Position numbers and translations under genes: made by a program. Positions 13,996 through 63,863 of a stretch of DNA of 64,000 nucleotides are shown here, in pieces. Each line of letters starts with the position of its first letter. The stretch's first letter is position 1. The notes below the pieces were generated by a model, which made no database searches, had not been told where the DNA came from, and saw nothing but the letters and a program-made list of their open reading frames with translations. The stretch covers positions 12,338,001-12,402,000 of the forward strand of contig OZ176051.1 of assembly GCA_964247055.1 (NCBI GenBank). The letters run 5' to 3'. The DNA comes from Paragordius varius (taxonomy: Eukaryota; Animalia; Nematomorpha).

Positions 13996-14571
13996 CACTT
14001 CGATTCAAATTGAGGTATCTAAATACCCCAGACTAAATTTAAATTAATAATTTTAAAAAACCACTGAAGGAAACGGTCCCAATTTAAATTTATGCCTCTA
14101 ACCTAATAAAAATTATATAAATATGCAAAAAAATTTATATAAAATTTTGTTTTGAAAAAAAAGTTCCATGTCAAACTACTTCGACGCCATTTTTATTTTG
14201 CAAAGTTTTTGCAAAATATCGTCATTTAGTTTTAATGGTAAAATTAAAGCTAATTTTTTATTAAAATTATATCTAACATTGATAGAAATAGAAAAAGCGG
14301 TTTATTTTGTAATATATTTTAATTTTCCTATTTCACATATGTCACGTTGACGAAATTTTTACCTTTCGGTTTTCGCTTAAAATAAGTAATAAGTATTTTT
14401 GAATAAAATTTTTTATATTTTACAATTTATTAATGTTATATAAATGCAAAATTTTGTCATGGTTTCGATCTCTTCCATACTTTTTAAAGTATTTGATTTT
14501 AAACAGGCCTGGGGTATCCAACTACCCCAATTTGAATCGAATGACTAAAATGAGTGTCTTGTATCCAAGTG
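13996..14571 (+). mobile_element. piggyBac-type non-autonomous element (MITE), copy 1
   Basis: TTAA on both sides (13992-95, 14572-75). Termini CACTTCGATTCAA…/…TTGTATCCAAGTG. A subterminal inverted repeat (ttcgattcaaattggggta…atacccca) lies at different distances from the two ends. Homologous copies at 40360 and 55189. Confidence 0.85.
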
Positions 14572-31783: not shown

Positions 31784-34700
31784 ATGCACAATAATTATAC
31801 CATTAACAAAAATCGACGAGCTGAAAATCCTTATTATGATATTAATAATAGCATAAATCATCACATGGTGAATACAACATTTTCCGATGGTGGCGAAAAC
31901 TCCAATTTGAATCTACATTATCATTTTCATCACATAAATTATTGTAACAATAAGGATAAGGACAAAATATTGAATCCTTGCATTAAACCGATCACACCAT
32001 TACCTGTTATACCATCTATTAGAGCAGAAAATCACTGTTTATTTCAGAGTGGGCAAATTGAATTCTGCAGGCCAAATCCAAATTATACCCCTAAACATGT
32101 GCCACAAAATACGAATGGTGTAAGCTCAACTCCTCAATATCAGGAGGAAAGGTTATTGTTTAAAAGTAGGAATGCCGATTTTTCAAATCCCAAAGATTAC
32201 CATAATAATAAGAATAATAATATTTGTATAAATACGGTAAATTGTTCCACATTCAATAATTATTTCTATAATAATTGGGAAGATCATCAAAAATTAAGTG
32301 CCACCACTATGTATCCATCCTCAACCGCAATCGATCGAATCAATTATTTAGTAACAAATTCGTCACACTCAAAGGCGTCAACTTATTCAAATAATTTTCA
32401 AATCCAAGAATTTGACAGATGTAATGAATCATTGTCGTTTGAACATATTTCTGCTCCATATATAAATAATAATAACAATAATTTTAGTTGCCAAAACGGT
32501 GAATACGAAAAAGTTAACAATTCGCCGTTTTGTGTTACGCAATATAAGCCTCTGGAATCGAATATGTTATCGTGTCAGTCACAAACGAATTCGATATCCA
32601 AAACGAAAGCCTTGACTGAAATTATAAAGGAAAATTCGGTAGCAGATTATCAAACTAAAAATTATAGAAACTATGATGAATCCTTGAACTCTTCTCCCAT
32701 GGTAAATTCTTATATAACATACTAACGATTCACTACAACCCTGATGAATAATTGTTAAACTGTTAATATCAAATTTTTGTGGAATCTTTTTATCTAAATT
32801 ATTAAGCAATTTATTTTGGATAACGTATAAATAGTCCGTATAAATTTGAACTATTGTAAAACAACACTTTAAATGCTTAATAATTATTATCCCCAGTAGA
32901 TTTTGATTTACGGACTAATATTTAAGTTTAAATGCCGCGTAATCAAGATTTAGGTTGAAAATTAACGTAACACTTCCATATAATTTTCATAACAATTATT
33001 AAAATATTTTAGATCCATGGCCCCTGCTAGAAAGATATGGTCATTCTTTCATAACTAGGCATTGAAAATTATATTAATTGGAATAATATAAATTCAATAA
33101 TCAAATTATACCATGATGTGTCAATTAATATGTGTATTCATTTTTAGTTATTTTAACTTTTTACAAAACAAATAGGGCTTGGTTGATAAAATTAGTGTTC
33201 GTTATAAGGATTGGATATGAAATTTGATATTATGCACACAAATATTTATTATAATCTAAAATTATTTTCGACCTGATTAATGAGAAACGGGATTAGCCAA
33301 TTATCAAATATTTGCAGAACTTTCAAGTGCTAACGTATGATATATATGAAGAGGCATATACGATAAGGAGTTACAGATTAAGATGCAATTAGGATTCTGA
33401 AATCAAACGGACGCAATGTATCTAAGAACAATAGACAAAATAGGAATAGTTATAATTTAGATTATTTATTAAAGTGTAATATGCATTTTTGTTATAAAAT
33501 TATCTAAATTATAGTGAATATTTCAAATAAAATCTAACGTTAATAAACTATCTTTGTATTCGGGAATGTCAAGTTTTTTTTTAGAAATGCCACAAATGTG
33601 GGGATTAGCAATTATTACCCAAATAGGGGTTTAATACAAGCCAATAAATGTATCTTTTAAACATTTTTTCAGAAAACGGGGATACCCCATTCAAAAGAAT
33701 TTATAATTAATTTATGAATGAGCCGAACATTGTCGAAGCATTTTTTTGAAGTCCCTGTGTTTAGCCGCTTCCTCAGTAAACTTCCAAAATCGATTTCCAA
33801 ACTATATCGTAACTACTGTTCGGATAATGTTTTTATTATAAAATGAGATTCAATTTTTTTTAAATTACACTAGTCGACAAATTTGGACATTTTTAAGCAC
33901 CACCACTCAAACTTTAAAATTATGACTAATTTCAGTGTTTTAAAACCGAATGTGAAATAATTTTTGATCCCGCCAATCAGAATATATTATAGGTTTTTCA
34001 ATTTTTCGAAAACAAGAGAAAATCGAGAGAAAATCAAATATAACTTTATAATAAAATGTTATTATATTATAAACTTAATATCATTTATTAAAGCGTTTTA
34101 AACTCTATCTTTTGAATATAAATATGTCATTTAAATATCAGAGAGAAAAAAATAGTACGGACTTAAACGTCAAAATTTAGTCTTTTTCTTTCAAGTGAAT
34201 TTTTAATACGTATAAAAAAATTTTAAAAAAATACTAAAAAAGGCATTCTATGGTTTTAACCTTCGGCTTTCAGATAGGCTATATTTTTTTGTTAGTTTTC
34301 GTTCTTTCGAGTTCTTATTAGGCTTTTTTTCTTGAGTTGGTTCTTACAAAAAATCCTTTATTTATACCTAGTGGATATACTTTATTTTTTAAAATTATTG
34401 GTTGTTTTGTATTTTTAATTTCAGATGGATGTTGTGTAGCCACTTTTAGTAGAATTTGCTATTATGGGATTGGACTATTTGTATTCTAATCTTTTTATTC
34501 AATTTAATTGTAGAATTTATCTAACTTTATTCTGTGAATTGGTTAATTTGACATGTCAATTTGCCTGGATATTGCTTGCAAGTTTTTCTTATCGGGCTTT
34601 ACGATTACTTATTGTTATCTTTGCCATATCTGGCATAATTGGATCGCTTGGGGGATATGAAGAGCTTGTGCAGCCGCCCGGATCTATCACATACATGCCC

Positions 34701-36118
34701 CTTTTAGATTTTTCTTTGGCCCTTAGCTTGTTTAGTATCTTATTTAATGCCTAGAATTTTGTTATTCATGCATGGAATATTACTTGTATCGACTTGTTCA
34801 TTTGAATATTTAAACATATGTACACGTGGAATGATTGTTATTTTTAAATTAAATACAAATTTAAAAATTAAATTTCGGAAAAATCCTATTAATAGCCTCA
34901 ATTTTCTTTTTTGTTTTGGCCTTTCCATGCCATTAGGTATCAGAAAATGCAAAAATAATGGGGTGGCGCAAAACCTTGTTGAGCAGTGTTATTTTAATAA
35001 TCATCTATTTAGATATCATAATCTAGAATATATAATATAAAACTACATGCAACCCGTCTTTTTTGCATCAAAAAACTAGTTTTTTTAGCGGGGTTCATAA
35101 TGTCAGTCAAGACGTATAAAAATATGTTAATATATTGTTTTGTTTAATTATATTATAAAATTTATTAATATATTCGGTTATAAACCGTTTAGGTTTCCCA
35201 AAAAATTTAATATAACATGATCTGATTTAATTTTGTGATTTAACGATACGGATCACCATAAAACTGGAACTAATTTTTTAAATGAAGTGGAAATCCAAAA
35301 GCGATGCAAATCCAGATAAAGAGAGTATTTAATTGAAAATGTTGTTATCCTTATATGCAGTGATAGTATAAATTGGCCTATGTTGTGATAATTATTAAAT
35401 ACATTGTCGAAAATATTTAATCATAATAATCATACAATCAATTTATTCAATAAGTTGCTGATATCTTATTTATTGTTTATATTTATATCACTTGTTTTTG
35501 ATTTCAACAAAAAAAATTTTGATGTATGTAACCTAATATTTATATCCATTTTGTTAAACAATTATTAGCATAAACCACCGTACAGTTATATAGCATTGAT
35601 TGCCTTAGCGATACAAGCTTCACCCATAAAAATGGTAACACTCAATCAAATCTACACTTTTATTATGGATAATTTTGCGTTTTATCGTTGTTCCGTGGAT
35701 ACCCAAGGTTGGCAAAACAGTATAAGACACAATTTATCGCTGAATGAATGTTTTGTCAAAATTGACCCTACGACAGTACTTCAACAACCCTCAACCTTTC
35801 AATCTGACATAAATGCCGATTATGAAGGCGGTATATTGAACACGTTAATTACTATGTTATGAATTTTATTTTCCAACTTAAAAGATAATCAATCTACTTT
35901 ATGCAGGCAAAAAACGCAAGTATGAAACCAATGATGGGATCAATAGCTATGGCCTCACATGCCCAATAAATGATAACAATGTAAATAGTACAAAAGGATG
36001 TTTTTGGACTTTGCACCCAGAAAGTTGGAATATGTTTGAAAATGGCAGTTTTTTAAGACGACGCAAAAGATTCAAAAAACCTCTTAATAATTATAATAAC
36101 GATAAGACTTTAACATAA
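31784..36118 (+). CDS. FoxC: Forkhead transcription factor, FoxC-like, ~463 aa; exons 31784-32701, 35569-35830, 35907-36118
   Basis: [40 protein letters not shown]…[20 protein letters not shown] and [29 protein letters not shown]. The [18 protein letters not shown] and [12 protein letters not shown] motifs best fit FoxC. GT-AG junctions are phase-compatible (0 and 1). Linking the Asn-rich 306-codon exon 1 is inferred from an in-frame ATG|gtaaat donor. Confidence 0.85.
33868..34988. mobile_element. 1121-bp non-autonomous DNA transposon with CACT..AGTG ends and TTA duplication, in Fox intron 1
   Basis: TTA|CACTAGTCGACAA…TTGTTGAGCAGTG|TTA; imperfect TIRs; second copy at 50610-51735. Confidence 0.85.
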
Positions 36119-40359: not shown

Positions 40360-40938
40360 CACTTGGATACAACGCACTTATTTTAGTCCTTCGATTCAAA
40401 TTGGGGTAGTTAGATACCCCAGGCCTGTTAAAAAATAAATTCTTTAAAAAATATAGAAGGAATCGAAACCATGGCAAAATTTTGCACTTATCTAACATTA
40501 ATAAACCGATATATATAAAAAATTTTATTTAAAAATACTTGATATTACTTGTTTTAAGCTAAAACCGAAAGGTAAAAATTTCGTCAACGTGACATGTGTT
40601 AAATGTAAAATTGAAAAATTATACAAACTAAACCGCTTTTTCTATTTCTATCAATGTTAGATGTAATTAATATAAAAAATTAGGTTTAGTTTACCCTTAA
40701 AATTAAATAAAGACGATATTTTGCAAAATTTTGTAAAATAAAAATGGCGTCGAAGTAGTTTGAGATGGACTTTTTTTTTCAAAACAAAATTTTATCAAGA
40801 TATTTTGGCATATTTATATAATATTTCTCAGGATAGAAGCATAAATTTAAATTGGGACCGTTTCCTTCAGTAGTTTTTTAAAAATATTAATTTAAATTTA
40901 GTCTGGGGTATTTAGATACCCCAATTTGAATCGAAGTG
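40360..40938 (-). mobile_element. piggyBac-type MITE, copy 2, ~80 bp upstream of the NME6 start codon
   Basis: TTAA|CACTTGGATACAA…TTGAATCGAAGTG|TTAA; reverse-complement homolog of 13996-14571. Confidence 0.85.
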
Positions 40939-43691: not shown

Positions 43692-46600
43692 CAGGAGTGT
43701 CCAACACAAATGGCTTGAAGAGCCACCTTTTCGACCTCAAAATTCCAAAGAGCCACTTTTTATTTATATAAATCAAGACATTGGTAACAAATAAATTTAT
43801 TATATTATTTGCTAATTAAATTATATCAATGCGTAAAAAAAGATAAAAATACATGGGTATGGTAAACTCATTGCAATTCGATAGTATGACTAGAGTAGAC
43901 CGTGGCGAATTTTATCACCAAAATGTAACCTCATTTATTCACACTGCGAGTTTATCATGAGGTGCGTACATGAAATTTTAAAATGTGTTTTAAGTATTTC
44001 GCGCGATACAAGATCACGATGAATCAAGCAATGGACCTGACTTAAAAGAAAATACATAAAAGCACATATATTAGCATCCTCAATTGATAGTCTCTGCAAA
44101 AGAATTTTACCATCTTAAAGGGAGATGATAATCATGCAATTTAAAATGTATTGAGTTAAATATGAGCGTGTCTTGTTTGATAACGATTGGTGCCCATCCA
44201 CGATGGGAAAAAACAAGGGTAAGATGGAAACCGATGCCATAAATATGATCAAATATATATAATGCATTGACACCGTAAAAATCTCTGTGCACATGATTGT
44301 TGTCGAGGAAAATGTCTAATAAAGTTTTTTTATCTAATAAAAATAAAAAAAATATTTTTCATTGCATAATTAAATTTTTAATGGGATATTTGTTTTGTAT
44401 ATTTTTGCTTAATTTATTCAGAGCTATATTAATATTTGATACAGCACATCTCAATTCATTCTCCAAGTTTTCATCAGTTAATAAAGAACGTGAAAGAGAA
44501 TTTGTGTATTTCATTTTAGAAAAAAAACTTTCACAAAGATAAGTGGACCCAAAAGCACAAATTAATCTTTGTGCAAAAATTCTTAAATTAGGAAATTTAT
44601 CAAACGTTATATATTTTTTATAAAATTCAATTTTATTTGTTTGCCCAAATAATAATTTTAATTCATTATTGGATTGAAAATCTAGTAATTCCATTTGTAA
44701 ATTAATAGGATCGTTGATAGCTTCAACGTAGAATGGACAACAAAATAAATCAAATATTTTTTCATATTTTGTCATATCCAGTATCGATTATTAAAAGCTT
44801 TTGATAATATGTTAATTTGATCTGCATATTTTAAAATCGTTAGTTTTACCAGCTTTATATCTATTCAATTCTGGAAAATGTTCAGCATTATTTTTTTAAA
44901 TGGCATTTAAATAACGTCAATTTTTTACAAAACGCTTTAATATGGTTTTTCGCATCAACAATTAAATTATCTTGCTTTTGCAAGGATTCATTTTTTTGAT
45001 TTAGTTTTTCGGTAATATCTACGGATAAGCATAAATCTGACAACCAATCTTCAATGGTTAATTCTACAAATAATTATTCTGCAATAGAAAAATATTTATT
45101 TCTTTTAATAAATAATAAAACCTTTTTAGACATTTCCCCCAACCAAGCCACCTTACATTTGAAAAAATATAAGATCTCCATATTGTGAATGAATTTCTTT
45201 TAATAACTCCTTAAACTGCCTATGCTTCAAAGCATGAGATTTTATAAAATTGACTTCTTTAATAACAACGGTCATAACATTGTCCATTTTCAGAGCATGT
45301 GCGCAGAGATTTTCACGGTGAATCATGCAATGCATTATACATATATGGTCAATATTAATACCATCGGATTCCATCTTATTTAACAATAATTTCACGGTTC
45401 CCTTGTTTTTTCTCATCATAGCTGGGGCACCATCTGTTGTCAAACAAGATAGCGCCCATATTTAATTTATTTTCCTCAATACAATTTAAAGCTTGAAACA
45501 TATCATCTCCCTTAGTTGGTTTTTCATCGGAAGTAAGCCTAACATATCTTCTGTTATATTAAAAAATTCATCTATCCCTCGAATAAAGACTACCAATTGT
45601 GATATGTTGCTTATATCTGTGCTTTCATCAAATGACAAGGAAAACGCCACAAAATTTCGAATTCTTTCTTTTAGGGAAAGTTGAATTTCTTCTGCGATGT
45701 CGGTAATTCGTCGACACATAGTATTGTGCGAAAGACTTCTACTGGATATTAATCAACTTTATTAGGCAAAACACATTTTATAATTTCCAGTACGCATTCC
45801 TTTACAAACTCACCATCAGAATAAGGCTTCATTTTTTTGGCGAGTAAATTGGCAACAATATAACTTGACTTTACTATCGGATAAGGTTGAGTGAATGAAA
45901 TTGTTGGTTGGAGATTATTAATATTTTTTAAAGATTTTAATTTTATTATTTTCATTTCTGTAGTTATATTAATAAAAATGCATGGTATTGGCATGTCTTT
46001 TTTAATCATACTCGCGAAACCCGTTTGTTGTAAATTTGCAAAGATAAGGCACTCCGCTTTGTTGTTGAGTAAACCCATATTTTAATTCCCAGTCGGGATT
46101 GTATTTTCTAGTTACTTTTTTAGATTTATGCATATTGAAAGCTAAATAAATTATTTTAAATACCTATTTTTTTGCAAGTAATTTGTTTCAATGGACCCAA
46201 ATTATAATTCCCAGTATTGGTATGAAAGTTAAATAAATTATTTTAAATACCTATTTTGCAAGTAATTTAATGTTTAAATGGACCTTAATTATAATTCCCA
46301 GTATTGGTATGAAAGCTAAATAAATTACACCTATTTTTTAGCATGTATTTCAATGTTTCAATGGACCCAAATTATAATTCCCAGTATTGGTATGAAAGCT
46401 AAATAAATTATTTTAGATACCTATGTTTTCCAAGTATTTCAATGTTTCAATGGACTCAAATTATAATTCTCAGTATTGGTATGAAGGCTAAATAAATTAT
46501 TTTAAATACCTATTTTTTGCAAGTAATTTAATGTTTTAATTTAATGTGAAAGTTATCATCTTGAAGTTGGAAATAACATGCAGGAAAAAATGTGTTTTAT

Positions 46601-47046: not shown

Positions 47047-50000
47047 CAGTATGCATTTTAATGTATGTTAAGTAATTTTATTGCCAGTCAAATAACATAA
47101 ATGGTTTATCAAATGCGTAAAATACTGACCCACAAAATTATATCGTAGTACACATATGAAAGAGGATTGACATGAGAATTAACATAGGCTAAATTTGATG
47201 GATATTATGTAATGTTAAATTTTGATAATATTATAGCAAAATTTATGTTAACATTTGAAATATTGTTGTTACGTATTTAGATGCGGAATTTTGTGGGTGT
47301 TTTTTTCTTTGATAAATTAATAAATAGTAAAATAGGTATTTTAAGATTATTTATGTTAATTATTCCTATGATAATATTTTACAACATGATAATTACCTGT
47401 ATTAATCAAAATTGGTATTATTATTTTATATAGTTGTTATTACAAAAAAACACAGGTAAATATATATTTGTCATATTAAATAGAATTATATTGTTTTTGT
47501 TTTTTATGTTTTGCATTGTTAATTATTAATAATTTTAAGTATTTCAGACATTTTAATCAGGTAAAAAATGTGGTTTTTAATAAATTTAGTCAAATTTAAT
47601 TTTTTTTGTTTTTTTATTTAACATTGTTAATTGTAATTAATTACTACATAATTTGGACATTTTAATGAATACAGGTAAAAATTGCTGTTTTTAGGGAAAA
47701 TTTATTTTTTTGTTTTTTAGGTTTTGCATTGTTAATTGTAATTAATTACTACATATTTTGGACATTTTTATAAATACCGGTAAAAATTACAATTTTTAAA
47801 TAATTTAGTAAAAATTTAATTTTTTTTGTTTTGTAGGTTTTGCATTGTTAATTATAATAATTACTACATATTTTGGACATTTTAATAATTACAGGTAAAA
47901 ATTTAATTTTTTTTGTTTTTTTATTTAACATTGTTAATTGTATTACTACATATATGGAAATTTTAATAATACAGGTGAAAATGGCGGTTTTTAACGAATT
48001 TCAAATTTAATTTTTTTTCTATCATTGTTATTTGTTATTAATTATTAAATATACATTTAAAAAACAGGTGAAAATTGCGGTTTTTATAAATTATAATTTT
48101 TAATTTTTTGTTCAACCTTTCAAATTTATTAATTACTATATATTTTTGATACATTGATATATACAGGTAAAAATTACTATCACTTGCGGTTTTTTAAATG
48201 TCTAGGAAAATTATTTTTTTTTGTTTTACATTGATAACTAATATATAATATAGATATCTGAGCATACAGGTAAAAATGTATGTTGTGGTTTTAGGTTTGA
48301 CATTTTATTTTCCAAATCCAACTATGTATAATTTTACAAACACCTTATGTCACCAAAGATTGAAAATAAGATCAAAATATATAAAACATCTTTTAAAGTA
48401 TCTGTATATCGCCAAATATAAATAATTTATTTATATAAATGCATAATTATACAAAATATTCATATTATTATGTTTAAAATTGGCATTTTTCTTGATATTA
48501 ATACAGGTAATTTGTTTCTACTCGATATAAGATGCGGTGTGCGTTCATGATGATCATATCTTAGATTGAAGAATATCATGAGATGCCAAAAAATAATTAA
48601 ATGCAGATAATCCTGAAATTTCAATCACCATTATTTTCTGGGTAAATTCTATCAACTAAAATATAAGATAGAAAGGTATTTATTAATATATTAGAAAATT
48701 GATACCTGGATTCTAGAATTATTTTCAACATAATTTTAAATATTGGGGGCTAAAACAATCAAAGTTTGAAAGTGGGTTGACATGGCTTTTTAACTCAATT
48801 TGCAAAAAAAATTTCTTCATGATGAAAATTCAAAAAGGATACTTTATGTTTTCGCGTTTTCGTTCTCCCATCCTAAACTATAAATATGAAAAGGCTTATA
48901 CGATTTCACCAATGACGTAGAAAATAGAAACAATTTTTTTTCAAAAGCTTTGAATGCAACAGCACTCCGAAAACTAAACAGGCAACACTAACATTGTTTG
49001 CTTTGGTGAAGAATAGATATTTATAGTTAATTTAGTAGAACGAAAACACAAAAACATAAAGTATGATTTTTGAATTTTTTATCATGAAGAATTTTTTTTG
49101 CAAATTTAGTTGTTAAAAAGCCAAGTCAACCTTATTGAGTTCCCTTTCAAACTTTAATTGTTTTAGCCCCCAATATTTAAAATTATGTTGAAAATAATTT
49201 TAGAATCCAGGTATCAATTTTCTAATATATTAATAAACCTTTCTATCTTATATTTTAGTTGATAGAATTTACCCAGAAAACAATGGTGATTGTTTCAGGA
49301 TTATCTGCATTTAATTATTTTTTGGCATCTCATGATATTCTTCAATCTAAGATATGATAATCATGAACGCACACCGCATCTTATATCGAGTAGAAACAAA
49401 TTACCTGTATTAATATCAATAAGAAAAATGCCAATTTTAAACATAATTATATGAATATTTTGTATAATTATGCATTTATATAAATAAATTATTTATATTT
49501 GGCGATATACAGATACTTTAAAAGATGTTTTACATATCTTGATCTTATTTTCAATCTTTGGTGACATAAGGTGTTTGTTAAATTATACATGGTTGGATTT
49601 GTAAAATAAAATGCCAAACCTAAAACCGTAACATGTATTTTTACCTGTATGCTCAGATATGTTAACTATATTTAATATATTAGTTATCACTGTATAACAA
49701 AAAAAATAATTTTCCTAAATATTTAAAAAACCGCAAGTGATAGTAATTTTTACCTGTATATATCAATGTATCAAAAATATATAGTAATTAATAAATTAGG
49801 AAGGTTGAACAAAAAATTAAAAATTTTACTAATTTAATAAAAACCACAATTTTCACCTGTTTTTTAAATGTATATTTAATAATTAATAACAAATAACAAT
49901 GATATAAAAAATATTAAATTTGAAATTTGTTAAAAACCGCCATTTTCACCTGTTTTATTAAAATTTCCAAATATGTAGTAATACAATTAACAATGTTAAA

Positions 50001-52228
50001 TAAAAAAACAAAAAAAATTAAATTTTTACCTGTAATTATTAAAATGTCCAAAATATGTAGTAATTATTACAATTAACAATGCAAAACCTAAAAAACAAAA
50101 AAAATTAAATTTTTACTAAATTATTTAAAAATTGTATTTTTTACCGGTATTTATAAAAATGTCCAAAATATGTAGTAATTAATTACAATTAACAATGCAA
50201 AACCTAAAAAACCAAAAAAATAAATTTTTACCTAAAAACCGCAATTTTTACCTGTATTTATTAAAATGTCCAAAATGTAGTAATTATCACAATTAACAAT
50301 GCAAAACCTAAAAAAACAAAAAAAATTAAATTTTTACTAAAATATTTAAAAATTTTAATTTTTACCGGTATTTATAAAAATGTCCAAAATATGTAGTAAT
50401 TAATTACAATAACAATGCAAAACCTAAAAAACAAAAAAATAATACCTAAAAACCGCAATTTTTACCTGTATTATTAAAATGTCCAAAATATGTACTAATT
50501 AATTACAATTAACAATGTTAAATAAAAAAACAAAAAAAATTAAATTTGACTAAATTTATTAAAAACCGCAATTTTTACCTGATTAAAATGTCTGAAATAC
50601 TTAAAATTACACTAGTCGACAAATTTGGACATTTTTAAGCACCACCACTCAAACTTTTTAAATTATGACTAATTTCAGTGTTTTAAAATCGAATTTGAAA
50701 AAAAATTTGATCCCGCTATCAGAATTTTTAAATTTTATAGGTTTTTCAATTTTTCAAAAACAAGAGAAAATCGAGAGAAAATTAAATATAACTTTATAAT
50801 AAAATGATATTATATTATAAACTTAATATCATTTAATAAAGCGTTTTAAACTCTATCTTTTGAATATAAATATGTCATTTAAATATCAGAGAGAAAAAAA
50901 TAGTACGGACTTAAACGTCAAAATTTAGTCTTTTTTTTCATTTAACACATATAAAAATTTTTTAAAAAAATACTAAAAAAGGCATTCTATGGTTTAAACC
51001 TTCGGCTTTCAGATAGGCTATATTTTTTGTTAGATTTCGTTCTTTCGAGTACTTATTAGGCTTTTTCTCTTGAGTTGGTTCTTATAAAAAATCCTTTATT
51101 TATCCCTAGTGGATATACCTTATTTTTTTAAAATTATTGGTTGTTTTGTATTTTGAATTTCAGATGGATGTTGTGTAGCCACTTTTAGTAGAATGTTATG
51201 GGGTTGGACCATTTGTATTTACCTAATTTATATTCAATTTAATTGTAGAATTTATCTAACTTTATTCTGTAAATTGGTTAATTTGACATGTCAATTTGCC
51301 ACGATTTTGCTTGCAAGTCTCTCTTATCGGACTTTACGATTACTTATTGTTATCTTTGCCATATCTGGCATAATTATTGGATCGCTTGGGGGATATGCAG
51401 AGCTTGTGCTGCCGCCCATATCTATCACACTATACATAAGCCCCTTTAAGATTTTTAATACTTTGGCTCTTAGCTTGTTTAGTATCTTATTTAATGCCTA
51501 GAATTTGTTATCCATGCATGGAATATTAGTTGTATCGACTTGCTTGTTTGAATATTTAAACATATGTACACGAGGAATGATTGTTATTTTCGAATTAAAT
51601 ACAAATTTAAAAATTAAATTTTGGAAAAATCCTATTGGTGGCCTCAATTTTCTTTTTTTGTTTTGGCCTTTCCATGCAATTAGGTATCAGAAAATGCAAA
51701 AATAATGGGTTGGTGCAAAACCTTGTTAAGCAGTGTTATTAATAATTAACAATGCACAACATAAAAAACAAAAACAATCTAAAATCTATTTAATATGACA
51801 AATATATATTTACCTGCGTTTTTTTAATTAGTAATAACAACTATATAAAATAATAATACCAATTTTGATTAATACAGGTAATTATCATGTTAAAAAATAT
51901 TATCAAATTTAGGAATAATTAACATAAATAATCTTAAAATACGTATTTTACTATTTATTAATTTATCAAAGATAAAACACCCACAAAATTCCGCATCTAA
52001 ATACGTAACAACAATATTTCAAATGTTAACATAAAAATTGCTATATATTCTCAAAATTTAACATTACATAATATCCATCAAATTTAGCCTATGTTAATTC
52101 TCACGTCAATCCTCTTTCATATGTGTACTACGAAATAATTTTGTGGGTCAGTATTTTACGCATTTGATAAACCATTATGTTATTTGACTGGCAATAAAAT
52201 TACTTAACATACATTAAAATGCATACTG
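47047..52228. mobile_element. Giant foldback (palindromic) DNA transposon, copy 1; ~4.05 kb without the nested insert
   Basis: TA|CAGTATGCATT…AATGCATACTG|TA. Left arm ~47047-48887, non-palindromic spacer ~130 bp, right arm ~49017-52228 (interrupted by 50610-51735). Each arm contains ~115-bp tandem units with caggtaaaaattgcggttttt. No coding capacity seen. Confidence 0.92.
50610..51735. mobile_element. 1126-bp CACT..AGTG element nested in the right arm of foldback copy 1
   Basis: The empty site is readable in the opposite arm (gaaatacttaaaattattaataattaacaatg) and shows a TTA duplication. Homologous to 33868-34988. Confidence 0.9.
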
Positions 52229-52363
52229 TAAAGCAGTAACACTTCATAATGTAATTCCAAAACTTGAAATTGCATGTTAGCTATCGCGTTTTGAGAAACC
52301 TTTTTTGCTTCTTTATATATTTTTTAATTGTAGGTGGTTGGGGCACGGATGTATTATATAAAT

Positions 52364-54710
52364 CAGTGATACTCAAACCGTGGCCCGCGGGCCGCATGCG
52401 GCCCTAAGAGTGCTTTAAAATTGCCCTATGACCATATTGATACAAAAATATTTTTTTATTGATGAAATTTTAAAATACACATAATCGGATTTTCGCTTAT
52501 TCCAATATTAATTTATTTTATTTAGATTTAATTTTGGTATTTTTCATTTTTACCCAATTTAAAATGTAGACAAATTTCCCTACGTTAAAATGATTACAGA
52601 ATTTTGGAACACGTTGTTTTTGTTTATGCATCTATTTTATTTTTTTATTTTGAAATTATTGCACTTTTTTGTATTTAAGCAATTTCATCCAAACTTGCAT
52701 ACACATATTCTTTTCATTGCTATCCTGCCTCATTTTTTACTCATTCCCATAAATATTTTCAAATCAACATCATTAAATTTCGACCTATTTTTTTTATAGC
52801 ATAATTGAATTATTTTCCTTTTTTTGAAATTTACATAATATTTGAACATAAATTCAAAGGATGACATCTAATGCTGAAAAACGTAAATTATCCGATGAAA
52901 ATCGCTCCTTTTAAAAAGAGAATGGGACAAATTCTATGTCGTTTTAAATAAAAATTTAACTAGCCTCATATGTAAGGACATTATAATTAAAATACAATAA
53001 TGAAAGACATTTTACAATCCATCATTCTCAAAACCAGAAAATCATGAGGAAAGAAACGAAAAATATTAAAAATTAAAGAATTATACCAGGAAGAAAAATC
53101 TACTATGTCCATAGCTTCTCCCAGGAAGGAACTCTAACATTAGCTTCGTATGTGGCTATATTTTAGGAAAAAATATAAAACCGTTTACTGATTGCCAACT
53201 AATCAAAAAAATGTACAATAAATGGTTGCACTTTTTTATTTGATAAATTCCATAGTAAAGATCAAATCATGAGGCGAATTAAAAATCTTCAACTTTCTGA
53301 TTCAACATGTGCTCGACGCATTATATATATTTATTGGCTCCGAAAAACTAAAAATATTTTAGTATTGCTATTGATTGAGCAATGACTCCTCAGTGTGCGC
53401 TCTTGTGAGATTTTGCAACGACAACATATCAACTGGGAATATTTGAAATTTTTACCAATATATAATACCACGAAAGAGAGTGATTTTCTCGAGTAATTAG
53501 CACTTTTTTCGATAATAATTGTATATATATGAAAAAATCGGTTTCGATCTGCACAGATGGCTGTCCCTCTATGATTGGAAACAAGGGATCTATTTCTCTT
53601 GAAATACAAATATAATTTGCAAAATATTTGATCATTTCACTGCTTTATCCATCAGCAAAACCTGGTTTCGTGTGTAAAAGATGAATACTCAATTCAGTAA
53701 TTTAAAACGGTTGTGGATATAGTAAACCACAGGGGCAGAGAATTCTACCGTCGTAAATTCAAAACCTTCTGAAAGATATCCACAGTGAATTTGATGATAT
53801 CCTTTTGTATACCACTGTGAGATGGTTAAACCTTAGCAAAGTATCATATAAATTTTTTGTTTTGAGACATGAAATATTATTTATAAATGATAACAGAAAG
53901 TTTGACGAAGAAATTAATAGTGACAAATGGTGGGTTTTATTAGCCTACCTTTGTGACATTACTTATAAATTTAGTATTTTAAATACAAGTCAAGGGACAA
54001 AAATAATAACCCAATTTGCTAATGGATAATTTAATATAGACAATTTATTTAATTTTATCTAATGAGATGAAATTCAGATTTCAGGAATTAAAAAATATTA
54101 AAAATTGCTTAAAACTTGAAAATCCCTGGCATATGGATATATCCAATATTAAGCAACTTAAGCATTTCGGTTTTGATCATGTGCTATCATTGAAAAATTC
54201 GTTTTTTAAAATGATTCCAATATGAAGGCTATATTCAAGGAGAATCGTAGAGTAGAAACATATGTAGAGTTTTTGCAAGATGTGCCAAATAAAAAGAAAA
54301 TATAAAAAATGTGCTCAAGTTATCCCAACTGTTTTTCCCTACCCTTACACGTTTGAGACGGCATATTCAAGGATGAAGTATGTCAAGATTACATACAGAA
54401 ATCGCTTAACCGATGATCATATGGACGACGTATTAAGATTGGCCTGTCATGAGGCGAAACCAAATTTGTCAAAAATTATTGGTTAATATCAAAATAAATG
54501 TTGTTATCAAAATATTTTAATTGTTTAAACTAAATGGTGCAAAACGAGTTTTTAGCTAAATTACATACGCAAAAAATTATTGTGCTGATTTAAAGTATAA
54601 TGTGCATATGTGTCAAATAGCTATAGGATATTTGCCATTATAATGTTCATGGCCCTCGAAAAAAAATATATTTAATTTGGCCCTTCAAATTTTTTTGGTG
54701 AGTACCACTG
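52364..54710 (+). mobile_element. hAT (Charlie/Buster) element, 2347 bp, degraded transposase
   Basis: Perfect 8-bp TSD ATATAAAT; TIR cagtgatactca / cagtggtactca; ggcccgcgggccgcatgcggccc subterminal motif. Fragments MTSNAEKRKLSDENRSF, CTDGCPSMIG, LLAYLCDIT and FETAYSRMKYVK…RNRLTDDHM. Confidence 0.9.
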
Positions 54711-55188
54711 ATATAAATTAAAGTTAACATTAGTTGTTACGTCTATACCTTTAATATCAAGTTTAAAATAAAAAATCGTAGTTACAATTATAGTTTAATA
54801 TAAACAAATGGATTTTGACTTATAAGGAATATATAATATGAAAAAATTTTAAGATGCGTATACCAAATCAGATTAGCAATTAATATAAATGCGGTATATC
54901 ATAGAGGCGAAATCACACGTGGCATTTATAGTTTAAAAGATATTAAATGTTAAACGAATGCGGCATATTGACTGGTTCTCGAAAGTTTAGAATATTTTTG
55001 AAAATTAAGTTTATTAAAAATATAAAATCGGTAGGGTTTCTAATCTCGGAAAAAATTGATTTAATTACTAAAAAATTTTAATCGATACCACCGTTAATTT
55101 ATAAACTCAAAAAACATAAAATAAATTTAAGACCATGTTAATAATACAAAAATACACTTATCGAACTTAAATTAAAACATCCTATTAA

Positions 55189-55698
55189 CACTTCGATTTA
55201 ATTTGGGCCATCTAAATACCTCAGTCCAAATTAAAGTTAAAATTCTAAAGGAAACAACCTATAAATAAACTAAAATATCTTAATGGAATTTTCTTTTGTA
55301 AAAAAAGTTCCTTGTCAAACTAATTCGACGCCATTTTTTTGCAAAATTTTGCAAAATATCGTGTTTAATTATTTTTCAAGGTATAATTAAAGATAATTTT
55401 TTATTAAAATCACATTTAACCTTGATATAAATAGAAAAAGTGGTTTATTTTGTTTTATTTTTTAATTTAGCCAATGCAAACATGTCACGTTGACTAAATT
55501 TTTACCTTTGGGTTTTACATAGGATGGTAATATATCAAGTATTTTTTAAAAAAGTTTTTTATATATTCCGGTTTATTAATGTTATATAAGTGCAAATTTT
55601 TGCGATGGTTTATATTGCTTGCATAATTTTTAAACAGGGCTGGGGTATCCAACTACCCCAATTCGAATCAAAGGACTAAAATGAAATGTACCCAAGTG
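55189..55698 (+). mobile_element. piggyBac-type MITE, copy 3 (more diverged)
   Basis: TTAA|CACTTCGATTTAA…GTACCCAAGTG|TTAA; collinear with 13996-14571. Confidence 0.8.
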
Positions 55699-55869
55699 TT
55701 AAACGAAAAAATTTTCTTATAACATATGTTGTGCTTTAAAGAATGTTATTATATACCATAAACGGAGCCATTCATATAAATATATAGCATATAGCTGAAA
55801 AACTTTATTTCCCTTTAATATTTAATTACACACAAGGATATTTACAAAATTATGCCTATAAGTCAACCC

Positions 55870-56840
55870 ATATCCGCAACAACAAAGGGCTGTCGTCGAT
55901 GCATTACACTGGTGTGAGACGTTTTGTGTAAACATTAGCCATGGTCTACTCCATCCTTTCTTGATACACTTTGATGAAACTCAATAACTTTACGTAGTGG
56001 GATCAGTTTCTATATAATAAATTAAAAATAAACCTGTAATTTTTCATATGTTTATTTTAAGAGTTCATGGAAATTATAATAGGATACTTTAATTTCTATT
56101 TAAACGCATTTTGTACAGTTTTTCCAAACATTTTATTCCTGTATCCAACCAGTTTGAATATGTAAAATTAACCAAAATTATCAAATAAACAGATCCAAGG
56201 TTTCAATTACATATAAAACCTAAATTATATACATAAAATACCAAAATATTTCTCCAAGTTTTTGTATGTCAAGTGTGCCCTATCCCACACTTGCACTATC
56301 TTCCAGTTTTTCTTAATCATATGATTTTTTATCACCTTCTGTTCAAGTTTTCTTGCTTGACTTAAGTGCCCTAATGTAAATTTTTTTATCATATGAAAGC
56401 AAGCTATGACTTGAAATGCTTGCAAGTCAAGTCAAAAAAATTTTTTTACCACCCCACCCTTTGTATTCTTGTTACCCGACACATCATTCTTAGCATTTTC
56501 ATTTCCGTAACGCTAAAATGTCTTTCTTCGTATTTTTGTTGCCCACTTGTAGGTCGAACAACTGAACTGCATATCTTACCTTTCACGCTAACAACAACAT
56601 TTCGATCACATAACACTCTGAAATTTTCTTCCAATTTACCCAACTGGTCTCAATTCTAAAATTATCGTCGTCATCTATGTATCTGAACTTAACATTGCTC
56701 CCAAATATTTGCACCTTTCTTTACCCTTTAAAACTCGATCCGCATCATTTCATGTTGTTGACCTCCAAAGGTAAATCTAGGTATTCTTTGTTTAATTTCA
56801 GACCGTATGTTTACCGTTTGCTTTAACTTGCAGTGAATCA
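55870..56840 (-). mobile_element. RTE LINE 3' relic (fragmented)
   Basis: Minus ORF …FRVLCDRNVVVSVKGKICSSVVRPT…VTEMKMLRMMCRVTR, typical of RTE C-termini. A probable 3' end with a (GTT)n-like tract lies near 55880. Confidence 0.7.
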
Positions 56841-58364
56841 GACAAATATTTGAAATACCAACCTGCTATAGATATAGAATTGTATATAAGCTTTTATAGC
56901 TACATAAGGTAAAAAAATTAAAAGATGTAAAATTAAAAATGATTTTTAAATCATAAGCCCCCAAAATGCTATAAATACAATCATATAAAAGCAAATAATG
57001 GTTAAAATTTTAAATTGAATAAGGAAAATTTAAATAAAATGTGTTTTTGATTGGATGGTTACTGTTACATTGATATTTTTTCCATAAATAATGCTTTATA
57101 TTATATTTTAGCCAATCACCTAATGAAAAAAACTTTAAAAATTCTTGATATTTAATTTTAAATTAATATTTATGATTTCTTACAACACAAATATTTTTTT
57201 TTTGAAAGCTAAATATGAAAAGCATTAATCTTTAATTGCTAAAATTAATGAGCTTATTAGTTAATGCGTCTGGCCTTTTGTAATATGCTCATCATAGGAT
57301 AGGTTTTTCATTTTAACATTTATTGATCTTCACAAATAACATTGATATGGGTTAAACAATTTAATACACATAATAATCTTTTTGCAATATAAAATATATA
57401 TTTGATAATTAATTTATATTGGGTTTCTAATAATAACTTACAAAAAAATCTAAATAATAATCACTAGGAACACTGATCTTTTCGAAAGAGTTTAGATATA
57501 TAATAATAAATTTTAAAATAATGCAATATCTCTATATATTTTATATTTAGATATATATATATATATATATACAAGACAAAAATCAATGTACAGATTGCGC
57601 GATAAAGTTTCAATTATGCTAGATCATAACATCTAGAAATATTTATGAAGAATGCGTATTTCGTTATAATTATATTTTTTAAAATTTTTGCTATTTTAGT
57701 GTACTTTAATCATAGTAATTCTTTTTCTATATAATTGGATGATGCCAATTCTTTCATTTTAGAATTTTGATCAAATTTGATAGTCCTGATATTAAAGCGG
57801 GAGTAAAATATCTTTTTTTCCAAAAAAATGCTTTAATGCTGAACATGAAAAGTCTTTTAATCACGTTGTCAGCCTCGAATTAGAAAGAATAAAAGTTCTA
57901 TGTTGCGAAATTCCATAAAATAGGATTAATCAAAATTTTGCTAAAAATTAAAATATTAAAAATATTTTTAGGTCATTATAGAGCATTTAATTAAAATTAA
58001 CATCTAGGCATTTTTACATTTTTATAGCCCATTTATGAGGAAGCCTATTTACTTGAGGGGGCCCATATCTAAAAGTTACTATATAAACAGTTGTTTTGCT
58101 TTTAAACATTGATTGGATATTTTGAAAATCGTGGTTCTTCCACAAAAGTGATAATAACTTTTTAAATGACTCACACGCACCGAAATCAACAGCACCATAA
58201 AAACTCTCATAGATTTTTTCAGCATACATATTTAATTAAAATATATTTTTGTACAAACTAGGGAAATTATCTTATTTGTTTATATTTATTAGGTTAATAT
58301 TTATTATAGAAATATTTATGGGCTGGAGTTTAGTGCATGTTTCTTTATATTTATTATCGTATTA

Positions 58365-61300
58365 CAGTATGCATTCTAATGTATTTTCAGTAATTTTATT
58401 GCCAGTCCAATAACATAAATAGTTTATCCAATGCGTAAAATACTGACCCCCGAAATTATTTCGTAGTACACATATGAAAGAGGGTGAGAATTAACATAGG
58501 CTTTAGTTTGATGGATATTTTGTAATCTTAAATTTTGAGAATATTATGGCAATTTATGTTAACATATGTAATATTGTTGTTACGTATTTAGATGCGGAAT
58601 TTTGTGGGTTTTTATCTTTGATAAATTAATAAATAGTAAAATACGTATTTTAAGATTTTTTATGTTAATTCCTAAATTTAATAATAAATATTTTCAACAT
58701 GCTAAATACCTGTATTAATCAATCTTGGTATTATAATTTTATATAGTTGTTATTATTAATTAAAAACCACAGGTAAATATATATTCGTGAAAATTTATGT
58801 AGTTTTTAGAATTTGTCTTTTATGTTTTGCATTGTTAATTATTAAAAATTTTTAAGTATTTCAAACATTTAATCAGGTAAAAATTGCGGTTTTTAACAAA
58901 TTTATTAAAAATTTAGTTTTTTTTGTTTTTTAGGCTTTGTATTGTCAATTGTAATTAATTACTACATATTTTGGACATTATAATAAATACAGGTAAAAAT
59001 TGCGGTTTTTAACAAATTTAGTAAAAATTTATTTTTTTTGTTTTTTAGGTTTTGCACTGTTAATTGTAATTAATTACTACATATTTTGGACATTATAATA
59101 AATACAGGTAAAAATTGCGGTTTTTAACAAATTTAGTAAAAATTTTGTTTTTTAGGTTTTGCATTTTTAATTGTAATTAATTACTACATATTATGGACAT
59201 TATAATAAAAATACAGGTAAAAATTGCGGTTTTTAATAAATTTAGTAAAAAATTAGTTTTTTTTGTTTTATAGGATATTCATTGTTCATTGTAATTAATT
59301 AATTTTGGACATTTAAATTAATAGAGGTAAGAAATGAGGTTGTTTTTATATTTAGTAATTTTCTTGTTTTTTTATTTAATATTGTTAATTGTAATTAATT
59401 ACTACATATTTGGCAATTTTAATAAATACAGGTGAAAATGGGGTTTTTAACAAATTTCAAATGTAACATTTTTTGATATTTTGGACATTTAAAAACTGGT
59501 GTAAATTGCGGTTTTTAATAGTCAAATTTTAAATTTTTTGTTTAACCTTGCTGATTTATTTATCACTATATATTTGTGATACATTGATATATACAGGTAA
59601 AAATTACTATGCGGTTTTTTAAATTTTTTAAAATATTATTTTTTTTGTTTTACATTGATTCTGAGCAGGTAAAAATGCATGTTACTGTTTTATGTTTGAC
59701 ATTTTATTTTCCAAATCAACTATTTATATTTTAACAAACACCACTAAAGATTGAAAATAAGATCAAGATATATAAAACATCTTTTCAAGTATCTGAATAT
59801 AGCCAAATATAAATAAATTTATTTAAATTATAAATGAAACAAAATATTTATAATATTATGTTTGAAATTAACAATATTCTTATTGAAATTAATACAGGTA
59901 ATTTGTTTCTAATTTTGATATACGATGCGGTGTGCGTTCATGATGATCATATCTTAGATTGAAGAATATCATGAGATGCCAAAAAATAATTAAATGCAGA
60001 TATTCCTGAAATTTCAATCACCATTATTTTCTGGGTAAATTATATCAAGTAAAATATAAGATAGAAAGGTAATTATTAATATATTAGAAAATTGATACCT
60101 GGATTCTAGAAGTATTTTCAACATAATTTTAAATATTGGGGGCTAAAACATTTAAAGTTTGAAAGGGAACTAAATAAGGTTGACTTGGCTTTTTAACAAC
60201 TAAATTTGCAAAAAAAATTTCTTCATGATAAAAAATTCAAAAATCATACTTTATGTTTTTGTGTTTTCGTTCTACTATCCTAAACTATAAAAATCTATTC
60301 TTCACTAAAGCAAACAATGTTAGTGTTGCTTGCTTAGTTTTCGGAGTGCTGTTGCATTCAAAGCTTTTGAAAAAAAATTGTTTCTATTTTCTACGTCATT
60401 GGTGAAATCGTATAAGCTTTTTTATATTTATAGTTTAGGATGGGAGAACGAAAACGCGAAAACATAAAGTATCATTTTTGAATTTTTATCATAAAGAAAT
60501 TTTTTTTGCAAATTGAGTTGTTAAAAAGCCATGTCAACCTTATTTAGTTCCTTTTCAAACTTTGAATGTTTTAGCCCCCAATATTTAAAATTATGTTAAA
60601 AATACTTCTAGAATCCAGGTATCAATTTTCTAATATATTAATAATTACCTTTCTATCTTATATTTTAGTTTATAGAATTTACCCAGAAAATAATGGTGAT
60701 TGAAATTTCAGGATAATCTGCATGTAATTATTTTTTGGTATCTCATGATATTCTTCAATCTAGGATATGATCATCATGAAAGCACACCGCATCGTATATC
60801 AATATTAGAAACAAATTACCTGTATCAATATCAATAAGAAAAATGCCAATTTCAAACATAATAATAAGAATAATATTTTGTATAATTATACATTTATAAT
60901 TTAAATAAATTTATTTATATTTGGCGATATACAGATACTTTAACAGATGTTTTACATATCTTGATCTTATTTTCAATCTTTGGTGACATAAGGTGTTTGT
61001 AAAATTATACATAGATGGATTTAGAAAATAAAATGCCAAACCTAAACCCGTTACATGTATTTTTACCTGTATGCTCAGATATGTTAACTATATTTAATAT
61101 AGTAGTTATCAATGTAAAACAAATAAATAATGTTCCTAAATATTTAAAAAACCGCAAGTGATAGTAATTTTTACCTGTATATATCAATGTATCAAAAATA
61201 TATAGTAATTAATTAATTAGGAGTTTGAACAAAAAATAAATTTAACTAATTTATTAAAAACCGCAATTATTACCTGTATTTATAATAATGTCCAAAATAT

Positions 61301-61878
61301 GTGGTAATTGATTACAATTAACAATATCACAAAAAAACAAAAAAAATTAAATTTGACTAAATTTAAAAACCGAATATTTACCTGATTAAAATGTTTGAAA
61401 TACTTAAAAATTTTCATAATTAACAATGCAAAACATAAAAGACAAAAATTTAAAATCTGCGTAAATTTTCACATATATATATTTACCTGTGTTTTTTTAA
61501 TTAGTAATAACAACTATATAAAATTATAATACCAAGATTGATTAATACAGGTATTTAGCATGTTGAAAATATTTATTATTAAATTTAGGAATTAACATAA
61601 AATATCTTAAAATATTTATTAATGTATCAAAGATAAAAACCCACAAAATTCCGCATCTAAATACGTAACAACAATATTACAAATGTTAACATAAATTGCT
61701 ATAATATTCTTAAAATTTAACATTACAAAATATCCATCAAATTAAAGCCTATGTTAATTCTCACGTCAATCCTCTTTCATGAAATAATTTCGTGGGTCAG
61801 TATTTTACGCATTGGATAAACTATTTATGTTATTCGACTGGCAATAAAATTACTGAACATACATTAAAATGCATACTG
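58365..61878. mobile_element. Giant foldback DNA transposon, copy 2 (3514 bp), spacer inverted relative to copy 1
   Basis: TA|CAGTATGCATT…AATGCATACTG|TA. Arms ~58365-60296 and ~60424-61878; the spacer is the reverse complement of that in copy 1. The left arm has more ~115-bp units than the right. Confidence 0.92.
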
Positions 61879-62981: not shown

Positions 62982-63863
62982 ATGAAAATTTTTCAAATCA
63001 TATACAACAACATCTCAACTATAGGATTTATTATTTTGATCATATATCTTGGTTTTCATTATAATGGAAAACAATGGTGGACATCTAAACCATTTGTGTG
63101 CTACATAATTTTTATAACTTTGCATGTAATCATTTTGGTGACAAATATCTTTGCAAATGCTATCCCAGTTACCATGTTACCATTAATTCGACAGATAATT
63201 CTGGTCCTTATGGCTATACCCAAATTCGTCATAGTAAACGATGTTATGCTCAAATGTATTTCCTTCAAGTCGAAGACATTTAAACGTATGCTAGGTGCTA
63301 TGGCACTGATTCCATTTGCAATAGTTGTGGCCACAATGGCGGCCATATTTATACCAATCCCACATATATTAAATACTAAAAATAAAAGTCCCATTCTTTT
63401 AATACTTATTAGGACTCTATTTCTTACCCGTTTTATATTATGTATCATTTCCGTTATAACGATATTGATGGCAGTAATTCTTTTGTTTAAAAAAAACAAG
63501 GCCTTAAAAAGGGTAGAAAGCATGCCATTAGCTCAAAACATTGTGATGAGATTGGAATCCGTTCCACAAATATACACTAATAATGTTAATGTAGGTCACA
63601 ATCACAGAATCGATAATCGTATATCTGCAATGACGAAAAATAGAATGCAGAGATATCTCAATGCCAAAAGGAATACCACAATTTTGATAGTTTTATCTGT
63701 GGGCTACATAATTAATGCGGTTGTATATCTTTGGCTAATTTTTGCCACTTTCGAGCCTAAAAACATAATTTTATCATTTTTATATAATCTGGATATTTTG
63801 TTTGCTATATTATTGTATCCGCAAAAGGATATTTACGCTAGAAACTTTCAGCGCCAAAGGTGA
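62982..63863 (+). CDS. Intronless 293-aa multi-pass membrane protein, putative 7TM receptor/chemoreceptor
   Basis: Long ORF in AT-rich DNA with about seven hydrophobic segments by eye, almost no N-terminal domain and a ~60-aa polar loop between helices 5 and 6. No DRY or NPxxY motif. A decayed paralog lies at 5.7-6.6 kb. Confidence 0.75.
   Translation: MKIFQIIYNNISTIGFIILIIYLGFHYNGKQWWTSKPFVCYIIFITLHVIILVTNIFANAIPVTMLPLIRQIILVLMAIPKFVIVNDVMLKCISFKSKTFKRMLGAMALIPFAIVVATMAAIFIPIPHILNTKNKSPILLILIRTLFLTRFILCIISVITILMAVILLFKKNKALKRVESMPLAQNIVMRLESVPQIYTNNVNVGHNHRIDNRISAMTKNRMQRYLNAKRNTTILIVLSVGYIINAVVYLWLIFATFEPKNIILSFLYNLDILFAILLYPQKDIYARNFQRQR

Follow-up and report, generated by a model that had tools for sequence, protein, structure and literature searches.

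Within a stretch of 64,000 nucleotides of the nematomorph Paragordius varius (NCBI GenBank assembly GCA_964247055.1, contig OZ176051.1, forward-strand positions 12,338,001 to 12,402,000; the whole stretch is hereafter called the window, and positions are counted from its first letter), two TA-flanked, CAGT-ended, non-coding foldback (palindromic) elements occupy 47047-52228 (copy 1) and 58365-61878 (copy 2). A comparison of their four arms shows that sequence has passed from arm to arm within the elements, and that it has done so to different depths in the two copies. The homogenised zones are nested and anchored at the element tips: neither copy is homogenised within 128 bp of the central spacer, one of the two is homogenised at ~130-800 bp and both are homogenised in the terminal ~420 bp. 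The original prediction, made from the letters of the sequence, had spoken of a gradient of concerted evolution, and the word is apt for this order from loop through middle to tip. Every inference that follows rests on four arms, that is, on two copies, because no further member of the family was found: a search of the rest of the window with nhmmer profiles built for the terminal, middle and core zones gave no match at E <= 10, and neither pattern scans of metagenome contigs with the conserved inner motif and the tip sequence nor an exact-pattern scan of genome contigs in a prokaryotic collection returned another copy. The parts of the two elements, and of a smaller element nested in one of them, are as follows.

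47047-52228, no strand: copy 1, foldback element, with TA at 47045-46 and 52229-30 and ends 5'-CAGTATGCATT
47047-48887, plus strand: left arm of copy 1 (1L), 1841 bp
47047-47460, plus strand: terminal unique zone of 1L, with partners at 51817-52228 in 1R, 58365-58777 in 2L and 61482-61878 in 2R
47484-48090, plus strand: tandem subrepeats of 1L, period about 105-116 bp, with ACAGGTAAAAATTGCGGTTTTTA in every unit
48760-49156, no strand: core of copy 1, made up of the spacer and inner arm segments of 128 bp (left) and 140 bp (right), arm mismatch 11.1%
48888-49016, no strand: spacer of copy 1, 129 bp, unique and non-palindromic
49017-52228, minus strand: right arm of copy 1 (1R), broken by the nested insertion
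49834-50609: subrepeat array of 1R, mirror of that of 1L
50610-51735, no strand: nested element, 1126 bp, with CACTA.../...CAGTG ends and a 3-bp target duplication (TTA/TAA), present only in 1R, 1L being the empty site
58365-61878, no strand: copy 2, foldback element, with TA at 58363-64 and 61879-80, inverted relative to copy 1 as judged by the spacer
58365-60294, plus strand: left arm of copy 2 (2L), orthologous to 1R, with ~5 subrepeat units (58874-59457)
59786-59890, plus strand: patch of 2L with dense 2L-only substitutions
60153-60564, no strand: core of copy 2, made up of the spacer and inner arm segments with side-specific variants
60295-60423, no strand: spacer of copy 2, 129 bp, reverse complement of the copy 1 spacer
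60424-61878, minus strand: right arm of copy 2 (2R), orthologous to 1L, with ~1.3 subrepeat units
33868-34988: second copy of the nested element, ~1.1 kb, 91% identical, with 5'-CACTAG...GCAGTG-3' ends

Element limits were set by self-comparison with blastn and repeat finding, together with inspection of the ends. All four tips read CAGTATGCATT with TA directly before each, and the end coordinates of the original prediction, 47047 and 61878, coincide with exact element tips. The flanks of copy 1 and copy 2 are unrelated to each other, and neither element is bordered by a direct repeat longer than TA; the two are independent insertions. With the nested insert left out, the arms measure 1.45-2.1 kb around a 129-bp spacer, so that they make up nearly the whole element. 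From the tip inward, each arm has ~420 bp of unique sequence, a run of tandem subrepeats (105-116 bp) and then ~800 bp of unique sequence up to the spacer. Tandem Repeats Finder reports a single unit in 2R and, in each of the other three arms, an array with a period of 105-116 bp; a conserved 23-nt motif is present in each unit. Subrepeat content differs between arms by 216 bp in copy 1 and by ~440 bp in copy 2, where 2R is the shorter arm. Outside the nested insert, the arms contain no open reading frame (ORF) of at least 80 aa.

The orientation of the copies relative to each other determines how arm variants are to be read. The spacers are reverse complements of one another, identical at 124 of 129 positions, and the best between-copy alignment passes through the centre on opposite strands. 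Copy 2 was therefore inserted in the opposite orientation, and 1L corresponds by descent to 2R. Near the spacer, variants are common to 1L and 2R or to 1R and 2L, a reversal of the pattern seen farther out that the original prediction had correctly spotted (8 sites against none in the innermost 128 bp). This apparent flip is plain orthology and requires no special process. Variants in the core follow descent; those elsewhere do not, and it is the latter that need explanation.

With each arm read from its tip toward the centre, we aligned all four with MAFFT and classified every gap-free column as by-copy (1L=1R, 2L=2R), by-side (1L=2R, 1R=2L) or of a third pattern (1L=2L). The terminal unique zone (47047-47460 in 1L) contains 14 by-copy sites and none of either other kind, whereas the last 128 bp before the spacer (48760-48887) contain eight by-side sites and none of the others. 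Between them lie the subrepeat zone, where the alignment is unreliable (11 by-copy, one by-side, none of the third pattern), and the zone 48091-48759 (five, one and three, respectively). The outer and inner parts differ strongly (Fisher p = 6e-7, or 3e-6 without the subrepeats; terminal zone versus core, p = 3e-6), and shared indels behave alike, with four by-copy in the terminal zone and one by-side in the core. The by-copy sites nearest the tip lie 24, 57, 65 and 88 nt from it, and the last by-copy site toward the centre, 48758, is 2 bp from the first by-side site, 48760.

All of the examples from which the original prediction had argued for copy-specific variants common to both arms recur in this alignment. 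The pairs ttaagtaatttt/ttcagtaatttt, ttatcaaatgcg/ttatccaatgcg, ggc-taaatttg/ggctttaRtttg, catgataattacctg/catgctaaatacctg and gatataagatgcgg/gatatacgatgcgg follow the pattern 1L=1R, 2L=2R. On the by-side pattern, gacatggc and ttcgcg...ctccc occur in 1L and 2R, and gacttggc and tttgtg...ctact in 1R and 2L. Arms thus group by element in the terminal zone in both copies (14:0), and over 1.7 kb in copy 1, and by side next to the spacer (0:8), as the original prediction had expected of a four-arm alignment. Transfer between arms is the sole way in which 14 substitutions and four indels can fit both arms of one copy only, and the central claim that sequence information moved between the arms of an element therefore stands.

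The two copies differ in the depth to which this transfer reached. In copy 1, arm mismatch falls from 11.1% within 128 bp of the spacer to 2.9% from there outward (step p = 5e-5), and the outer mismatch is uniform to the tip (dispersion test p = 0.29). Mismatches occur at 128 bp and closer, the next one only at 172 bp, and the inner arm segments of the copy 1 core were never homogenised. Copy 2 has no step at this position (7.8% inside versus 6.3% outside 128 bp, p = 0.47): its arms are 8-13% apart for more than 1 kb outside it and mismatch drops to 2-4% only at distances above ~1500 bp from the spacer. Across the unique sequence of the middle (equivalents of 48091-48759), arm mismatch is 9.7% in copy 2 versus 3.8% in copy 1 (p = 3e-5), while in the terminal zone the two copies are alike (3.6% and 4.1%, p = 0.7). 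Homogenisation of copy 2 is thus confined to the terminal ~430 bp. As proposed, the region beside the loop did escape in both copies; the boundary that was to mark it is visible in copy 1 only. The inner junction, sharp at 128 bp in copy 1, has no counterpart there in copy 2, whose homogenised zone starts ~1.5 kb out.

The transfer is old. Between the copies, the orthologous core has diverged at 15 of 397 positions (3.8%, ~1.9% per lineage), and terminal-zone singletons, at ~1.85% per arm, match the core's per-lineage rate. Divergence of the arms since the exchange is about that of the core between copies, subrepeat numbers have drifted, and one arm carries the nested insertion. The exchange was therefore early, near the birth of the copies, and is not continuing. 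The nested element, which is non-autonomous and CACTA-like or PIF-like, postdates the arm replacement. To say, as the original prediction did, that the arms are kept alike is accordingly too strong: the outer arms differ by 2.9% in copy 1 and 6.3% in copy 2, in addition to the large subrepeat differences and the transposon in 1R only.

The same comparison bears on where the by-copy variants came from. Between copies, the outer arms are ~7.8% diverged, above the core (p = 0.002-0.03), and the by-copy class (14/378, 3.7%) added to the core's 3.8% gives this figure. A surplus of this kind cannot come from the conversion of new mutations; it is the by-copy class itself, which favours the sorting of old differences. 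Most by-copy variants are thus probably old left/right differences, sorted in opposite directions in the two copies, rather than new mutations that spread later; the core still shows such an old left/right difference at 8 of 126 positions. We considered an ancestor with perfect outer arms, in which the by-copy variants would be new mutations, and dropped it, as the arms would then have to evolve at twice the rate of the core.

We favour an account, to which we assign about an even chance of being correct, in which ancestral left/right divergence was followed by tip-reaching arm replacement in each lineage. Copies 1 and 2 would represent two independent insertions of a non-autonomous, foldback-shaped cut-and-paste transposon with TA duplications and CAGT ends, the left and right arms of whose common ancestor would have been ~4-6% different over their whole length. 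Each lineage would then have lost the sequence of one arm to that of the other through one or a few long, non-reciprocal replacements that extended as far as the tip. The stretch replaced would begin 128 bp from the spacer in copy 1 (~1.7 kb), with a donor of left-arm type, and would be limited to the terminal ~430 bp in copy 2, with a donor of the opposite type. Old left/right differences would look copy-specific wherever replacement went in opposite senses in the two copies; where copy 1 alone was overwritten, they would appear as 2L-only variants; and where neither was, they would still follow the orientation of the spacer. The events are old, the arms having since drifted at about the rate of the single-copy core, and the chance that a site is homogenised would grow with its distance from the loop, which would give the gradient.

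Beyond the ancestral divergence, we infer a single switch and a link to repair or transposition. The most likely mechanism would be one template switch between the arms, after which synthesis ran on until the partner arm ended, presumably by fold-back (hairpin) priming or by copying resembling break-induced replication while a broken or excised element was being repaired. If missing homology beside the spacer were what stopped the transfer, the outer tips should be affected to the same extent, which they are not; a single switch that copies to the tip is therefore favoured. As neither copy has an inverted piece of flank, arm replacement would have preceded the present insertions. Fold-back priming at inverted repeats next to a break, with outward copying, is established in yeast (PMC10622511).

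Several observations weigh against this account. There are only two copies, and by position long conversion tracts would produce the nested order of 0/2, 1/2 and 2/2 about one time in five. Although 2L has more middle-zone singletons (28) than the other three arms (14, 5 and 7), the excess sits in the ~100-bp patch at 59786-59890, where 11 of 100 aligned sites are 2L-only versus 2 for 2R; outside it the counts are 17 and 12 (p = 0.46). The view that the middle of copy 2 was not overwritten therefore rests mainly on its high arm divergence, and the patch represents either old right-arm sequence that has been kept or sequence that came in from a diverged relative. The five by-copy sites in the middle zone, of which 48719 and 48758 adjoin the first by-side site, fit only if mutations preceded the copy 1 event or if copy 2 also underwent some conversion, and none of the models accounts for them well. 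At 48278, 48300 and 48381, 1L groups with 2L and 1R with 2R, which neither this account nor any other simple model predicts; these sites might mark reciprocal arm exchange, or homoplasy in an AT-rich stretch. The unreliable alignment of the subrepeat zone makes the copy 2 switch point only rough. Finally, neither copy is accompanied by the inverted stretch of flank that fold-back priming at the present sites should have left behind.

Two rivals remain live: conversion in place by long tracts, and exchange between copies. The former, in the form closest to the original prediction, is patchy arm-to-arm gene conversion that continues at each locus, with a fixed barrier ~120-130 bp from the spacer where too little homology is left before the heterologous spacer or where the inner arms are too diverged. 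The sharp step of copy 1, with mismatches up to 128 bp and then none until 172 bp, is what such a barrier predicts, as is the abutment of by-copy sites 48719 and 48758 on by-side site 48760; the stretch of copy 1 at 130-500 bp is moreover its most similar (3 mismatches versus 12 expected, p = 0.002, for a stretch chosen post hoc), and arm-to-arm conversion is well documented in sex-chromosome palindromes (PMC8600007, PMC3723533). Yet copy 2, with its divergent arms for over 1 kb beyond the supposed barrier, has no step there, and arms that are 3-6% diverged, with unequal subrepeat number and an uncorrected nested insert, give no sign of later activity. An edge effect would also be expected at the tips, where by-copy sites come within 24-88 nt of the end, and conversion of new mutations cannot double the between-copy divergence of the arms relative to the core. 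We consider continuing conversion unlikely.

Exchange between elements seems to us improbable to a similar degree. Here the family would be modular, with a 385-bp core recently shared or converted between copies and arms from different subfamilies, and ectopic exchange between copies aligned in either orientation would have mixed left and right. Divergence between copies is indeed twice as high in the outer arms (about 7-8%) as in the core (3.8%), and at 48091-48500, 2R differs from the copy 1 arms by 5.4-7.3%, the same as those arms from each other, while 2L is 12-14% from all three other arms. The copies are neighbours, 6 kb apart, with no other fragment of the family in the remaining 55 kb, and chimeras in which both terminal inverted repeats (TIRs) belong to one subfamily and the middle to another are known from Galileo (PMC3573991). 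Left-right passage of variants would still be needed, however, so that the donor changes and the principle does not; whichever copy donated the core would itself have needed much greater divergence between its inner arms than between its outer ones; and the equal singleton load of arms and core is simpler under the sorting of old differences. An assembly artefact, in which the consensus of one arm was copied into the other, or chance is far less probable than either. Long palindromes are difficult to assemble, but these arms differ by 3-6% and by hundreds of bp of subrepeats, one of them contains a nested element with a clean target duplication, and both copies have proper ends and unrelated flanks. 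The original prediction had itself allowed that shared variants might be too few; their counts are far beyond chance (Fisher p from 3e-6 to 6e-7), with ~0.4 by-copy sites expected from parallel mutation, as estimated from singleton counts, versus 19 seen in unique sequence.

Three other mechanisms were discarded. Steric exclusion of duplex pairing near a short loop was dropped because copy 2 has no step there. Template switching between arms during sister-chromatid gap repair, when worked through on paper, inverts the centre but leaves the arms unhomogenised. Quasi-palindrome correction at replication forks would be expected to act most on sites close to the loop, contrary to the pattern observed.

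The elements have the structure of foldback-type transposons, with long inverted arms, a short non-coding centre, internal tandem subrepeats and dispersed copies (here two) that have TA on both sides and unrelated flanks. They resemble Drosophila FB, Galileo and Tetris and C. elegans Tc4 in their very long TIRs with subrepeats, short non-coding middle and unequal subrepeat number. The target-site duplication of FB is 9 bp and that of Galileo 7 bp, unlike the putative TA duplication and the CAGT ends found here; the 9-bp duplication of the Drosophila FB/MuDR-related Foldback family is absent, with nothing longer than TA at either copy. A TA duplication and 5'-CAGT ends are typical of Tc1/mariner/pogo elements, as at the ends of Tc1 and pogo. 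TA is present at all four junctions, though it is itself palindromic and the genome is AT-rich, and 5'-CAGT is terminal at all four tips. These ends point to a putative non-autonomous member of the Tc1/mariner/pogo group; no transposase partner of that group was found in the window, where the sole transposase trace is an unrelated hAT fragment. Tc4 inserts into CTNAG, with TNA duplicated (PMC11071193). A target of this type was rejected, as the flanks (...TTTTTA/CAGT and ACTG/TAAAGC in copy 1, ...CGTATTA/CAGT and ACTG/TATTAG in copy 2) contain no matching TNA bracketed by C and G.

A repeated motif within the arms may be relevant to transposition. The motif ACAGGTAAAAAT(TGCGGTTTTTA) occurs 7-9 times in three arms and four times in the shortened 2R, in one orientation relative to the arm. 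Of its 32 matches in the window, 29 lie inside the arms, with 1.6 expected by chance. Multiple transposase-binding sites have been described in the long TIRs of Galileo (PMC3688188), and by analogy the ACAGGTAAAAAT array is a candidate set of transposase-binding sites, with the ACAGGTAAAAATTGCGG repeat as the putative target.

Inverted arms that evolve in concert around a unique spacer are also found in sex-chromosome palindromes (human Y P1-P8; primate and mouse X), in which, according to PMC8600007, PMC3723533 and PMC8327919, the spacer likewise occurs in either orientation and the centre behaves unlike the arms. Those palindromes differ in that their arms are 10 kb to Mb in length and >99% identical, undergo continuing conversion and are not mobile, whereas here the arms are <2 kb (nested insert aside) and 3-6% diverged, and exchange looks old and episodic. 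The near-identity expected under continuing conversion is absent, given the mismatch of 2.9% and 6.3%, the large indels and the insert in one arm. Palindromes formed by fold-back priming (Tetrahymena rDNA, yeast inverted duplications) provide another parallel, since they have a short imperfect inverted repeat and spacer at the centre with the outside copied from one side (PMC10622511, citing Yasuda and Yao 1991). Such fold-back-primed events, however, duplicate a chromosome arm to give dicentric or linear palindromes, whereas here there is a clean mobile element with normal flanks and a depth that differs between copies. In adenovirus panhandle repair, adeno-associated virus (AAV) inverted terminal repeat (ITR) correction and Streptomyces arm replacement, one terminal repeat is rebuilt from the other out to the tip. 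These are replicating linear genomes, unlike the elements described here, and we know of no replicative linear form of this foldback element.

Among foldback transposons, chimeric copies and hints of within-element homogenisation have been reported for Galileo (PMC3573991), and such hints also exist for Tetris (PMC4079207). Nested, tip-anchored arm replacement with an exempt core was not described for any transposon in the literature searched, in which older foldback work is thinly covered. With two copies, the present case is a tidy, small example of a known process, the concerted evolution of inverted repeats, and establishes no new principle. A broader proposal, which we regard as doubtful, is that in this family one arm is regularly restored from its partner through a single switch and synthesis to the tip, so that a damaged or one-armed copy would regain matching ends and mobility. 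If so, it would be the transposon counterpart of terminal-repeat correction in linear viruses, and the family would hold a readable distribution of switch points, with homogenisation rising away from the loop. Foldback transposons cause inversions and other rearrangements, and the upkeep of their very long arms is poorly understood. Rebuilding of arms from each other out to the tips would explain the persistence of such unstable structures and the matching ends of each copy, and would make repair events readable from sequence alone.

Two further observations concern the cores (48760-49156 and 60153-60564). Of the eight old left/right substitutions, four are C/T differences in the same direction throughout, so that one hairpin strand would have G-T (G-U) wobble pairs and the other C-A mismatches; the bias in direction is not significant (p about 0.13). 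When folded as single strands, the plus strand of copy 2 reaches -158 kcal/mol and that of copy 1 -115 kcal/mol, a gap that is partly due to a 10-bp deletion in 1L. A permissive Rfam scan of the core returned one match to a miRNA precursor (23.9 bits vs a cut-off of 195), which we take as that of a generic long hairpin; at gathering thresholds Rfam detects nothing in the window, and no tRNA was found.

The window as a whole is a transposon-rich stretch of eukaryotic genome, with ~27% G+C and four ORFs of at least 120 aa in 64 kb. Just upstream of copy 1, and apparently unrelated to it, remnants of a hAT transposase extend over 44359-46078 on the minus strand; a match to the hAT C-terminal dimerisation domain (E = 5e-5) is seen in the ORF at 44359-44775, and the adjacent ORFs at 45153-45443 and 45749-46078 have no significant family match. 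A 293-aa ORF at 62982-63863 (plus strand) has the look of a multi-pass membrane protein; it matches nothing in Pfam, and a search of 5.8 billion clustered proteins returned no homologue. A forkhead-domain exon is located at 35596-35862 on the plus strand (Pfam E = 3e-22), and 3 kb upstream of it a 313-aa asparagine-rich ORF without a family match occupies 31784-32725 on the same strand. A tandem array at 46136-46540 (~4.7 units of 89 bp, 85% matches) lies 500 bp before the left tip of copy 1. A dispersed ~430-bp repeat is present in both orientations, at about 80% identity, at 14116-14553, 40380-40818 and 55260-55684, the last of these copies sitting between the two foldback elements.

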